Shown here piece after piece: positions 83 to 25,167 of a stretch of DNA of 25,896 bases (its first letter is position 1; the number at the start of each line of letters is the position of its first letter). Where the stretch lies: contig CAXIUT010000063.1 in assembly GCA_964035545.1 (NCBI GenBank), positions 1 to 25,896 on the forward strand, in the 5' to 3' direction. Origin of the DNA: Bugula neritina (taxonomy: Eukaryota; Animalia; Bryozoa). A program made the translations under genes and the position numbers. The notes under the pieces were generated by a model. It did no database searches and was not told the DNA's origin. It saw only the letters and a list, made by a program, of their open reading frames with translations.

Positions 83-141
83 TAAATAAATAGATAACAG
101 TATTTATCTTTTATATTGATATTATATCATTCATCTTCGAT

Positions 142-502
142 TCATTGATAAATAACAGGATAAATATCACCCTCAGTCTCAGTAGTCTTTGTACTTTTCT
201 TCTAAGCCTATCCGTTCTACTTGATCAACACGTATGTCCGCATCCAATTAGTCACACATCCAAAACCACCAAAACAACACACACTCACTCCACATCCAGA
301 TTACTCACAGCATAAACAACAACTGTTCTCGTGAATAGAGGAAAGTAAAGTCGGACGGCACAACCAACACCCGCAACCCCATACATGAATAGCTAGACCA
401 AGACAACCAAGAGAACACCAACAGCAGTCACAACATAAATAGTTGCACATGTATAGTTCAAGAAAAGTCCAAAGAGAGAATTAATAATTATATATTTATC
501 AT
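142..502 (-). CDS. Small Cys/Gly/Trp-rich hypothetical protein (start uncertain)
   Basis: With TAR=Glu the frame reads FSLWTFLELYMCNYLCCDCCWCSLGCLGLAIHVWGCGCWLCRP...CCLCCEESGCGVSVCCFGGFGC...IYQ then TGA (142-144). There is an in-frame ATG at 450. The ATG at 502 is one base out of frame (possible indel). Confidence 0.65.
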
Positions 503-632
503 TATTAAGACCATCAAGTATTTAGATATTTTTATTGATTTTATTTGAAAAAGTCCATTAGTATAGCGATATTATTAATATAATTTTGGAGTCTTAATTC
601 TAATTTGTAATTTCGATAAAATCAGAATAAGT

Positions 633-1866
633 ATGAATAAAATAATGCAAGTAATTAAGGTTGCTTTGTTTATCGTAGCTTTCATGACTCTGCAATCCTA
701 GGAAAAGTCTCTTAGAGCTCTTCTTTATTGCCATTTACCTGTGTGGGATCAGAACAAGCCGATGTAGGACTTATAAAACTTTCGAATGATATTAAATGAT
801 CGATTAGCAGTGAAAGGTATTGATGTCGTTGTAGATTTTTGTGATATCTAAGGCAATTCATCTAAGCTGTACAACAAAGATGAGATAAATTAATTATGGA
901 ATTTCTATGATATCTTAGAAATAGATATGATTGCATTCCAAACTATCAATCAATCTTTGATGAAATTTACAAAAGAATAAATTAGCTACTATGATGACGT
1001 CTTCTCTTTTCAATGGAATCCAGTTACCATCACATAAGGAAGTCATTAGTATCTAGTTGGTTCTCCAGGTTTGATCTGTAGTGATTTCTTACTCACAAGA
1101 AAAGGAAACTACAAGAATCAGCTGTACATGAATGGAGGCTTTAGTGCTTATAAAGCAGCACCTCTTTATGTAGATTTCTTTATCAACCTAAACTAATCAA
1201 CCAAACTTGACGATATTAACTACTAACACACTGATAAACAAGTACTTGATCAAGTGGCATAATTTTTGGCTGAATGCCGAGAACAACCTCGACACTTTGA
1301 TCCCAACTAAAACAACACTTGCTTTAACTATAACTTTTACTAACTATTTGTTCTATCAAACAAATCTACTATCTTTGGCTACTCTGAATATGCCTTTAGA
1401 TTGATAACTGACCAAGTAGTCAGAACATCTTAGGAAATTATGATAGAACATATAATGAGAAACCATAAGAAGAAGGTTGTTTATCTTGATCAGTTGATAG
1501 CCAAGTAGCCTTTGAAAGATTAGCATTATTAGAATAAAAGAAAAACTATTATTGAATTTTATTAGTTTATGCTGTCAGATGAAGTCTTATCTATCTATGC
1601 TGAAGGAAGCTATATGTAAAAAAATAGTAGATATAACCATTCGATGACCTACTTGATTCCTCCTAAAAATAAGCTTTTTCAATAAACTTAGATCAAATTC
1701 AAATCTATACCAACAGATCTATGAAAGTCTGTTCAAAGAATCAGACGTTATTTATCCAGTTTACCAGAAAGACTTTTTCTATAACTTCTAGGAGCTGTCG
1801 ATAAAGATAAATCAAGATCTGATGAATTACAAATCAACATAAACAAATCTGATCACATAGCAATGA
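633..1866 (+). CDS. Thiaminase I-like protein (periplasmic-binding-protein fold) with N-terminal signal peptide; apparent +1 frameshift at the T-run 1675-1679
   Basis: Hydrophobic N-terminus, then LRALLYCHLP, YDILEIDMI, DDVFSF, VGSPGLICSDFLLTRKG (Cys codon 1077-1079), IFGYSEYAFRL (Glu codon 1386-1388), VVYLDQL, YLIPPK. These are collinear with recalled bacterial thiaminase I motifs (LKVAIYPYVP, YGLPQILCTNLLFYRKG, FIGYSESMMRM, FYSDVV, YLLPAR). Uncorrected, the frame stops at 1722-1724. Removing one T extends it to TGA at 1864-1866. No introns. Confidence 0.75.
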
Positions 1867-2058: not shown

Positions 2059-3366
2059 TCATTTTTGGTTGTCTTAGTAGTTTTTAACAATTTTTTGATA
2101 GTCAAGCAGTTGCATTTTCATATTTTGTACTTAATTATCTAACATTTTATATTTTTATTTGTTTCTACTTATTTATATTTGACACTGCTTATGTTCCATC
2201 TGGATATTTCTCAAATATTTCAACTACTCCTCCTGTCTTCTATTCTTCAACTACAACTATCTTATCTTCAACTAGTACTCCCTTGATTTCTTATCATTCT
2301 GGTCTATCATCTTCTGCTTGTTCGCATTTATTATACTCTACATCCTAGAATTACTATAGATCTCTTCCTTTGAAAATATCTCATACTTCTTTGACTACTC
2401 ATCCTTGCTGTCCATTATTATCCCGAATTCTGTCTTCAATTTATCCTGCCAATTTTTGTTCTACTATATCAGCTACTCAGCTATATTCTCTTTCATCCAC
2501 TGATGCGATAGTATCCCTTCAAGCGATATCCTTTATTAAGCTTTTAACCTCAATATTTTATCGATTAGATCTCTACATGATTCTGATACTTGTTTAGGCA
2601 CATCATATTTCAAATTTGATATGTTATTTTTAATTTATGCCTCGCTCATGTTGTTCTGCTGGTATAGAGCTGATGAAAATGGACTGTTGCCAGTACAAAG
2701 TTCATAAATCAATACTCCTATACTCCATATATCTACTCTATAGTCATGCAAGTGATTCTTGTCCACCATCTATGGAGCCAGGTAGTCCAAAGTACCACAA
2801 TAGGTCTATCTTTTGTTCTTTCCTTATGTAAAATTAGACCATCCGAAATCAGCCAATTTAGGGTTGTTATTTTTATCTATAAGAATGTTCTAGGGCTTTA
2901 TGTCTCTGTGAATTATATTTTTTTTATGAATATATTGTAAGGCTAGGACTATTTGTCTAATATAATCAGCTGTTCTGGGTTAGTCGAATCGTTTGTTGGG
3001 CGTTTTCATGAGAGTGTTGAAGACTTATCCTTTTTATGCGAATTATAAAACAAAATAAATAGAGAAGTCGTCCTAGAAGTGGTTGTATAATTTGACTATG
3101 TTCGGGTGGTTTAAGTCGTACATGATTTTAACTTATGTTTTGACATGTTAGATTAGTTTTTCTGTTTTAAGAGTACTTTTTTTTATTTATTTGATAGCAT
3201 AGATAGCACCTGATTTTTTATGTCTTGCTTTCCAAACTACTCCAAAAGACCCTTCCCCTAGTGTTGCTAGTTTTTAGAAATCTGATTTGAAGGATTCTGC
3301 TTACCATCCAGCCTGGACGGTAGGTGACAAGAACATAATTCTTTTAGCTAGTTTAGTTAACTTCAT
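2059..3366 (-). CDS. Aurora-like Ser/Thr protein kinase with C-terminal coiled coil (435 aa, no introns)
   Basis: GEGSFGVV, YAIK, KT(taa=E)VKIM, HPNIVKLY, HRDIKP(tag=E)NIL, LADFGWS, YCGTLDYLAP(tag=E)M, DIWSIGVLIYEL. DFGWS and CGTLDY are Aurora-type. The frame is open from ATG 3366 to TGA 2059. Confidence 0.93.
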
Positions 3367-3693
3367 TTGATAATTTAATATATCTTTCTTATTACTTTTA
3401 GTCATAGTATAAGGTGTAGTCAGAATCGATTAGATCATAGATATTAAATGTAGTTGATATTGTTATATTTGATATTATTGATATGTTATGGTAAATATCT
3501 ATGATTTAATATAGGTAAGCGACTGCTTATATCATTTATATCAATAAGAATCACTTAAAGTTGATTTTATGGAGAGTATGATGTAGGTGATGGTGTTTTG
3601 GTTGATTTGTGGTCATATTGTAAACTAATTTAGTGTATTTAGTTGATGGTTGATATAAGTTACCTATTATAATACAAATAAATTCTGCCAACA

Positions 3694-13053: not shown

Positions 13054-14687
13054 ATGGACTACGATGCTCGTAAAGACTCACTGTTATCTGAACAGTAATC
13101 ATAAAAAGTCTAAATCTACCTCTCGGCACGTAAGATAGGAGCCTCTCTTGTCTCAGCCTAAGCTTTTCTACAAGAAGGCAATAAACCTAGAAAAAATGTT
13201 TTTGCTTCAAAATCGACACAAGTACACTCATCCAGAGCTGATTTTGCCAATTCCATCGTTCTCTAATATTTTTTTGAATGTAAAACTGTTTTTATGAAGA
13301 TCGACAAAAATTGTTTTTTGATGTTTACGACTGTTCAAGCCAACCTCGCACCCTTCTAGGCAAGATATCAACCACAGTAGGATAGATCTTCAACGGAAGA
13401 GACAAAGGAATCATCAAAGATATCTAAAAGAATGGAGATCCCAATGGACAAATGCTACTCAAATGCTAAAAAGTATAAAGAGGAACACAAAAATATGTAT
13501 AATTCGATGTCGTTACTAGAAATCTAGACGTAGGATCATCTTTTCTCTGTTTTGGGGAAGGAAGCGCCCAATGGAAACTCTACAAAATAAAAAACAAAGA
13601 AGAATATCTTCTGTACTAGAGTTAAACCAGATAAGGCAAAAACAACAGATACAATCACTTCAAAATCAACTAAAAAAGATTATGCAACAATAACCCACAA
13701 CAGCCAGTCATCATCCGCTTCTTCAACGACTCAACTATGATCGGATAATCTTATTTCAACTTACAAACTCTCCAAGAAGGAAAACACAGATTAACTCTAA
13801 CCGCCTCAGGCTCATAAAGAGGCATAGTTATGTTCTAACACTACAAACAATACGTCAAACACGCCTTCACAGACTACCTCTCATCAGGCATGCAAATGGC
13901 CATGGTCCTATGCATCGATTTCACAGCAAGCAACGGCATACAGACAGCCAACTCCTCCTTGCACTACCATAACGCACACAAAAGAAGTCAATACGAATAG
14001 GCATTGCATGAAGTGAGTGCAATTGTGCTCGACTATGACACTGATAAGTTAGTACCATGCTTTGGATTTGGAGCTAAAGTCAATATGCCTACTTTCAATA
14101 CCTACAACAAGGTGCACCATTGCTTCCCTCTCAACGGATCATAAGCCAACCCGAATCTCTTCGAATTAGCTGGAATGGAATAAGGCTATCGAAGATGTCT
14201 ACCCAGTCTACAATTTTCAGGTCCTACATATTTCGCTCCTCTCCTCAGAGAAGCCATGAACGTCTGTCAAAACATGAAAGCATAACAAAAAGAATACATG
14301 ATTCTTCTGATTCTAACTGATGGTATCATCCACGACAAAGAAGACGTGAAAGATCTACTAGTCAAATGCGGTAGACTACCATTGAGCATAATTATCATTG
14401 GCATTGGAGATAACGGAGGTGATGATTGGTAGATCATGAACTAGTTGGATGACGATGACATGCAGATGGTAGATAAGTAAGGGAACAGGACAGTTAGAGA
14501 TCTAGTTCAATTTGTAGAATTTCAAAAATTTCATAACAATGGAGTTGAACTAGCCAGCCAGGTTTTATATTAATTGCCTAGACAAGTTTAAGACTATCAT
14601 ACTTTGTGTGGACTCACTCCTGAAGTGTATAGAAAACATTTGGATTTGGATATTAGAGATCAAATGAGTAGAGTTAATAGACGTTGA
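13054..14687 (+). CDS. Copine (two degenerate C2 domains plus vWA domain, 537 aa); intron 13280-13299
   Basis: FTDYLSSGMQ, CIDFTASNG, SLHY, DYDTDK, FGFGA, HCFPLNG, SGPTYFAP, ILLILTDG, LPLSIIIIGIG, RDLVQFV, VLYELPRQV. Confidence 0.93.
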
Positions 14688-15760: not shown

Positions 15761-16594
15761 ATGCTAAATAAATATTCACCCCATCTCTTCAAATATCTAT
15801 ATTCCACAATAAATCTAAAAATATATCCTGAAAAATCAACAGCATATCTCACTCTAACCAACCCGAACAAAAGAAATCCTCTATCTTTGTCTACCATTCA
15901 ATAGCTATCATCCAGTCTCAAAGAAGTGCAGTCAAAAATATAAGATAATAACCTCAAAGTAACAACCTTTGTATGATAGATATTGATACTAAGAGGATAG
16001 GGTAGTGTATTTTCTGCAGGACATGATTTAAAAGAACTCAAATATACAAAAAATCCTTAAATAATATTCTAATAGTGTATGAAAATGATGCTACTTCTCA
16101 AATACCTTCCCATTATTACTCTTTGTGCAGTTGATAATATTGTAACAGCTGCAGGACTTCAACTAGCATTGACTTGTGATCTGATAGTTGCAACAAAAAG
16201 TGCCAGTTTTGGGATACCAGGCATGAAAAGAGGATTATTTCCATCAACTCCTTTAGTACAACTGCAAAGATGTTTGAAATCAAGCTGCATAACCAAAGAA
16301 ATAGTAATTATTGGTGATATGATGAATGCCAATGAAGCTTTTGATAATGGATTGATAAATAAAGTAGTAGAAAACGATCAGTTAGAAAATTAGATCAATA
16401 ACTACATCAATAAAGCAAACAATATCAATAGATAAGTACTTTAGATAATAAAAAGAAATATTTCTTCATAAAGATAAATAAAAAAATAACCAATTTATCA
16501 CACAACTTAAGCCATAACTCAAAATATAATATAGATCGATGACTGCTACTAAGATGTATCAGCATAGTAAAATAAGAAAGAATATAAAAAATGA
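15761..16594 (+). CDS. Second, diverged ECHDC3-like crotonase paralog (270 aa); intron 15959-15979
   Basis: NPNKRNPLS, VFSAGHDLKEL, TAAGLQLALTCDL, FGIPGMKRGLFPSTP, GLINKVV. The intron sits at the same position (after ...LK) as in the upstream copy. Confidence 0.85.
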
Positions 16595-25087: not shown

Positions 25088-25167
25088 GGGGTTGGGGTTG
25101 GGGTTGGGGTTGGGGTTGGGGTTGGGGTTGGGGTTGGGGTTGGGGTTGGGGTTGGGGTTGGGGTTGG
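25088..25167 (+). repeat. Right telomere, (GGGGTT)n
   Basis: About 13 perfect units, reverse complement of the left telomere and of similar length (~80 nt). Confidence 0.96.

Follow-up and report, generated by a model that had tools for sequence, protein, structure and literature searches.

Thiaminase I is a cause of thiamine deficiency in aquatic food webs and in livestock, and the bacterial enzymes are extracellular. To our knowledge, production is confirmed for a few bacteria and a single amoeba, and the natural role of the enzyme is debated. The thiaminase of Paenibacillus matches PDB entries 2THI, 3THI, 4THI, 4KYS and 4HCW and the Pfam family PF22141 (Thiaminase-1 domain). Two papers name Naegleria gruberi as the sole eukaryote in which a thiaminase of this class is confirmed (PMC5627462, PMC9839694), and no paper linking thiaminase with ciliates was found in the literature searched. 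The gene described here lies close to a telomere in the window (the whole stretch of DNA analysed, 25,896 nt). There are sound grounds for regarding it as a real but very divergent member of the thiaminase I family (thiamine pyridinylase, EC 2.5.1.2) and, judged from its sequence, it extends a known kind of enzyme to a new lineage of eukaryotes. The features of the locus are as follows.

1-82: telomeric repeat (CCCCAA)n, period 6, 13.5 copies, marking the chromosome end.
83-632, plus strand: 5' flank between telomere and start codon, presumed to hold the promoter and leader.
633-1667, plus strand: coding part 1 in frame A, codons 1-345, with 19 TAA/TAG codons read as Glu (homology, synonymous strain differences).
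633-698, plus strand: signal-peptide-like N-terminus of 22 codons, with a hydrophobic core at residues 7-19 (hydropathy).
870-926, plus strand: Tyr (870-872), Asp (909-911) and Asp (924-926), corresponding to Tyr50, Asp59 and Asp64 of Paenibacillus thiaminase I.
1059-1109, plus strand: GSPGLICSDFLLTRKGN block, in which the Cys codon 1077-1079 corresponds to the catalytic Cys113 (family alignment).
1377-1388, plus strand: GYSE block, in which the Glu codon 1386-1388 corresponds to Glu241 and the Tyr to Tyr239 (family alignment).
1482-1490, plus strand: YLD block, corresponding to Tyr270 and the pyrimidine-binding Asp272 (family alignment).
1650-1667, plus strand: YLIPPK block, corresponding to YLLPxR of the family (Tyr314, Arg319; family alignment).
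1665-1669, plus strand: A5 run at which frame A passes to frame B, with one A fewer in sequencing run X2 (family alignment, X2 contig).
1669-1866, plus strand: coding part 2 in frame B, 65 codons with three TAA/TAG, ending at the TGA at 1864-1866 (C-part HMM).
1722-1724, plus strand: TGA that closes frame A in the sequence as assembled.

The ATG at 633 is located approximately 550 nt downstream of the telomeric (C4A2) array. No coding signal was detected in the intervening 83-632, and ORFs in that region gave nothing with the thiaminase HMM described below. Frame A contains 19 in-frame TAA/TAG (TAR) codons and no TGA from the ATG through 1664, and frame B (+1) is open from 1660 to the TGA at 1864-1866, with three further TAA/TAG. 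Because no stop-free piece of the ORF under the standard code exceeds 48 aa, the gene is invisible in a standard-code translation, as the first-pass annotation of this subtelomeric ORF had stated. The same annotation claimed a signal peptide, and hydropathy of the predicted protein is compatible with one, showing a 13-residue hydrophobic core (residues 7-19) followed by polar QS-EEK. The convergent spacer at 1881-2042, which separates the gene from a kinase gene, contains degenerate tandem repeats (7-nt TCAATAA, 49-nt and 14-nt units).

A (GGGGTT)13 array at 25088-25167, in the orientation of a right-hand telomere, is followed by 729 nt of other sequence. Positions 1-25167 look like a complete chromosome of ∼25.1 kb, and past 25167 either the contig continues into something else or an alternative telomere-addition site is present. 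Between 22000 and 25000, the G+C content falls to 21-25% and long low-complexity repeats translate as FYLI- or K-rich runs. A stop-free piece at 13839-13997 (plus strand) includes a copine/vWA-like motif, CIDFTASNG...SLHY. An enoyl-CoA hydratase/crotonase-like gene at 15800-16590 (plus strand) carries a 21-nt intron, GTAAC...ATAG, at 15959-15979, and two more introns of 20-21 nt are found in a proteasome alpha-6 gene, indicating that introns in this genome are tiny.

Use of the thiaminase alignment as arbiter between Glu and Gln at the TAR codons was dropped, as it is too weak for the purpose: the profile score is 46.8 bits with Asn at these codons, 45.0 with Glu and 42.0 with Gln. The code was therefore read from two other genes in the window. 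An Aurora-like Ser/Thr kinase gene lies on the minus strand (2062-3531) and converges on the thiaminase-like gene. Its HRDIKP-E-N and AP-E motifs have TAG in the Glu position, and its DF-E and L-E-FA motifs have TAA there; all are established kinase motifs. The proteasome alpha-6 gene (minus strand, ∼10022-9244) has TAG at the Glu of two blocks, one of them FL-E-KK. Both genes terminate at TGA. These positions, which uphold the earlier proposal that TAR codes for Glu, firmly indicate that TAG is Glu in the nuclear code of the window; the case for TAA as Glu is weaker than that for TAG but is also well supported by the motifs. TAA and TAG as Glu with TGA as the sole stop is the arrangement of the peritrich nuclear code (NCBI table 30).

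Searches of Pfam, NCBIfam and the PDB with stop-free pieces (≤48 aa) returned no useful matches. In hmmscan, Pfam PF22141 gave 154.6 bits with the Paenibacillus control and none with the window pieces, which were limited to ≤48 aa. When the 48-residue piece containing the Cys was searched with phmmer against 1.84 billion representative proteins, one true match was obtained, a 68-aa fragment (P0002), together with two low-complexity false matches. A profile made from this piece and P0002 found nothing in the PDB. The contig encoding P0002 (L001, 666 nt, NCBI assembly GCA_013565675.1) includes the N-terminal 215 codons of a homolog with in-frame TAA/TAG, which shares 39% identity with the window protein over the N-terminal half and has a similar hydrophobic leader directly ahead of the first conserved strand. 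At approximately 385-404 of L001, between FQWGQ and KLIGSPGLFC, an in-frame TGA is located in an A-rich stretch, perhaps reflecting a tiny intron or an assembly error.

Bacterial members of the family were reached with a degenerate DNA pattern for the Cys block, which was fitted to both the window and the Paenibacillus motif and hence is a retrieval device, not an independent test. It matched four times in 596 Gb of prokaryotic genomes; two matches were due to chance, and the other two fall in thiaminase I genes, one in Paenibacillus thiaminolyticus and one in P. dendritiformis. The Paenibacillus protein in turn retrieved 120 family members, named thiamine pyridinylase by their sources. An alignment-based scan of JGI metagenome contigs gave 88 pattern matches and no relatives, and a word search of 5.8 billion proteins with the same alignment recovered P0002 alone. 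Together, these searches yielded one homologous fragment in another TAR-sense ciliate (L001).

A local HMM was constructed from 109 thiaminase I members (Pfam PF22141 family) and run on every TGA-delimited ORF of the window. The joined reading (frame A, X at the break, frame B) scored 32.8 bits with X at all TAR codons and 45.0 bits with Glu, and frame A by itself scored 25.4 bits. Each of the remaining 280 window ORFs reached ≤0.9 bits, and the best of 3000 shuffled-sequence controls reached 7.3 bits. With Glu at the TAR codons, partial profiles gave 14.6 bits for the N part, 7.5 bits for the Thiaminase-1 domain and 13.4 bits for the C part, so that all contribute to the match. The window protein covers family positions 37-374 collinearly, and hhalign of the ciliate pair (window and L001) against the family gave a probability of 98.3% (P 2.3e-14, 304 columns). 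This full-length match supports the thiaminase I-like identity suggested at first pass.

Tyr50, Asp59, Asp64, Cys113 and Glu241 are invariant among the 109 family members, and conservation reaches 99% at Pro109, Asp272 and Tyr314; none of these positions is substituted in the window protein. The catalytic Cys and Glu, previously described as intact, fall in columns that are 100% conserved. Identity extends to 10 of the 15 columns with ≥97% conservation. GSPGLIC, of the GxPxxxC type, is encoded at 1059-1079, and the other collinear blocks are LLYxxLP, LY (with the Tyr at 870-872), YDILEID and a second LY. The GxPxxxC, GYSE and further collinear motifs reported from the sequence are all present, and they align with the conserved blocks of thiaminase I. 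The Arg319 column is occupied by the Lys codon that opens the A run. Several well-conserved positions are replaced (Tyr18 by His, Trp33 by Leu, Trp47 by Ser and Gly231 by Ser), and Gly233 is likewise changed. L001 has Tyr in the Tyr18 column, where the window has His, and carries the same active-site residues wherever the fragment covers them.

The assembled copy does not have an uninterrupted reading frame, as a 1-nt break leads to a predicted product of 363 codons in which the last 19 residues form an unrelated tail. The break is real in the sequence, with the C-part profile scoring 10.6-13.4 bits in frame B versus 1.4 bits in frame A. The family alignment is gapless from YLIPPK in frame A (1650-1667) to the start of frame B at 1669 which, together with these scores, places one extra base at or just after the A5 run. 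A surplus T at 1675-1679 had been proposed. The A5 run (1665-1669) and that T5 run fit the homology equally well, but the sole natural variant seen in either run is an A4 in place of the A5, which refines the proposal.

Strain variation was assessed by aligning Logan contigs of four runs with the window. Run X2 comes from a different strain, which differs by 24 substitutions over 1.4 kb and has A4 at the break site. Its contigs also contain two further indels, an AA inserted behind 872, where the invariant Tyr codon ends, and a 2-nt deletion at 1594 that leads to an immediate TGA, each breaking a frame that homology supports on either side. In frame A, 14 of 20 strain differences are synonymous versus 4 and 2 in the other frames (P 2e-6 to 9e-4). 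This distribution indicates that purifying selection acted on frame A of the thiaminase-like gene during most of the period since the two strains diverged. No run recorded as RNA contains the gene.

Introns across the frame change were modelled with donors at 1584, 1616 and 1627 in combination with acceptors at 1673, 1691 and 1716, and all were rejected because introns in the window are 20-21 nt and the family alignment leaves no gap. Programmed +1 frameshifting was also rejected, as no Euplotes-type stop or slippery motif is present at AAA-AAT. The proteasome alpha-6 gene (minus strand) has a frame change of its own at GGCC 9544-9541, after GIDVESG, where one base is shared by the two frames. 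By PDB numbering there is no spare residue and no room for an intron at this point, and a base is probably missing from the assembly. A comparable 1-nt defect in an essential gene makes an assembly indel plausible for the thiaminase-like gene as well, and an assembly or strain-level defect at the A5 run is considered more likely than fixed pseudogenisation.

That the resemblance to thiaminase I arose by chance, or that the protein belongs to the solute-binding fold in a generic sense, is very improbable and is refuted at the sequence level. Such an explanation would account for the lack of Pfam, NCBIfam and PDB matches among the stop-free pieces and for the insignificant pairwise phmmer comparison with Paenibacillus thiaminase, and generic solute-binding proteins can reach 19 bits on the HMM (E. 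coli PotD 19.4, MalE 10.5, UgpB -2.1 and ThiB -2.4 bits). It does not account for a full-length profile match of 33-45 bits when none of 3000 shuffles exceeds 7.3, for the hhalign probability of 98.3%, or for scores from all three parts of the protein with matching catalytic columns. Against the ciliate pair, hhalign gave ≤1.4% for the four E. coli proteins (ThiB 0.5%), and 93.7% and 57% for single thiaminases. Pairwise blastp reached 51.6 bits, collinearly, with a Salipaludibacillus thiaminase, versus ≤18.5 bits in scattered, non-collinear segments with solute-binding proteins. The window protein is thus closer to thiaminases than to the transport class of these proteins (SBP_bac_1/SBP_bac_8), and generic ABC solute-binding proteins, which the first pass had named as possible best structural matches, score far lower at the sequence level. 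An intact, expressed gene that has taken on a new role, either as a thiamine- or pyrimidine-binding protein or as an enzyme acting on thiamine analogues, is somewhat easier to envisage but still improbable. The very long branch with identity of ≤23%, the non-catalytic replacements (Tyr18 to His, Trp33, Trp47 and Gly231/Gly233) and the 7.5 bits of the Thiaminase-1 domain part alone would be consistent with a change of function. Retention of the nucleophile, the base and the pyrimidine-binding Asp and Tyr despite ∼77% sequence turnover argues against it, as do the values for ThiB, the thiamine-binding relative in E. coli.

A more substantial competitor, though on balance unlikely, is that the subtelomeric gene has only recently lost its function and is decaying as a pseudogene, with different indels in different strains and no enzyme made. 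The 1-nt break at 1665-1669 in the window, the +2 behind 872 and -2 at 1594 in X2, the lack of an RNA run with the gene and a telomere only 550 nt away all fit this explanation. However, 14 of the 20 between-strain substitutions are synonymous, all of the invariant residues are intact, and the 344 + 65 codons are free of in-frame TGA. X2 is represented by short Logan contigs of unspecified library type, and the defect in the proteasome gene means that indels in the assembly need not be biological. The preferred reading, to which a probability of roughly 0.55 is assigned, is a genuine ciliate nuclear gene with TAR as Glu that encodes a diverged thiaminase I, in which the break more probably reflects an error of assembly or a strain lesion and from which a secreted, thiamine-cleaving product would be made. 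The broader proposal that peritrich-code ciliates produce an active, exported thiaminase I of the solute-binding fold, and would be the second eukaryotic lineage to do so, is more tentative and falls short of even odds.

If the preferred reading is correct, a preprotein of ∼410 residues would enter the secretory pathway and be released or sent to food vacuoles. From the known mechanism of the family, the Cys of GSPGLIC would add to C6' of the thiamine pyrimidine, activated by the GYSE Glu, while the YLD Asp would hold the pyrimidine; the thiazole would leave, and a second nucleophile would free the enzyme. In its normal state the gene would then probably be unbroken, with the single-base break in the A5 run introduced by the assembly or present as a strain-level lesion.

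In a maximum-likelihood tree of 64 family members, the window protein is found on an end branch of 4.88 substitutions/site, its best identity being 23%. It attaches near the Paenibacillus group, with a placement that lacks reliable support. A donor lineage was rejected as a conclusion from this tree, since a branch of this length with unsupported placement allows no donor to be named and no statement to be made on horizontal transfer. The horizontal gain that had been suggested is thus not shown by the phylogeny (branch of 4.9 substitutions/site).

If a ciliate enzyme proved active, abundant bacterivores and epibionts would join the possible sources of thiaminase, and fresh water, activated sludge and the surfaces of aquatic animals would harbour a source that has gone unrecognised. 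Such an enzyme would also provide a eukaryotic system in which its purpose could be addressed, whether to starve prey or competitors, to destroy antivitamins of thiamine, or to serve in salvage. A reassigned code can conceal whole gene families, as illustrated by the single 68-residue fragment recovered from 5.8 + 1.84 billion proteins; if the reading is right, gene calling under the standard code has hidden a ciliate thiaminase from every protein database.

Among enzymes of the same reaction class, the fish thiaminase I (zebrafish NP_001314821.1) is TenA-like, with a fold unrelated to that of the solute-binding thiaminases (PMC9839694). Although it also comes from an aquatic eukaryote, neither this enzyme nor thiaminase II is a homolog of the window gene. 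E. coli ThiB/TbpA and other solute-binding proteins (SBP_bac_1/8) have the superfamily fold in common with thiaminase I, and the Paenibacillus thiaminase itself matches PF01547 and PF13416. These proteins lack the catalytic Cys or Glu, and the window protein is not significantly similar to ThiB, MalE, UgpB or PotD.

The bacterial thiaminase I enzymes (Paenibacillus thiaminolyticus, 2THI/3THI/4THI; Clostridium botulinum BcmE, 4KYS) are likewise ∼400 residues long and carry a cleavable leader at the N-terminus, immediately ahead of the first strand, where the putative leader of the window protein also lies. The same set of Cys, Glu, Asp and Tyr residues occurs in the GxPxxxC...RKG, GYSE, Y-x-D and YL(L/I)P blocks. 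In contrast, the window protein is at most 23-25% identical to the bacterial enzymes, is found on a very long branch, and has replacements at several conserved aromatic and glycine positions. Its gene is eukaryotic and nuclear, has 22 TAA/TAG Glu codons and a frame break as assembled, and is not accompanied by an operon of bacimethrin or thiamine-salvage genes.

A eukaryotic parallel is the thiaminase I of Naegleria gruberi (4HCW/4HCY), which has the solute-binding fold and is found in a free-living, bacterivorous unicellular eukaryote. Naegleria belongs to a different supergroup (Heterolobosea) and uses the standard code, and the activity and structure of its enzyme are proven, whereas the window gene belongs to the Ciliophora and its product is a predicted enzyme. 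The Naegleria enzyme is itself strongly diverged from the bacterial ones, with 61 bits between the Paenibacillus protein and 4HCW.
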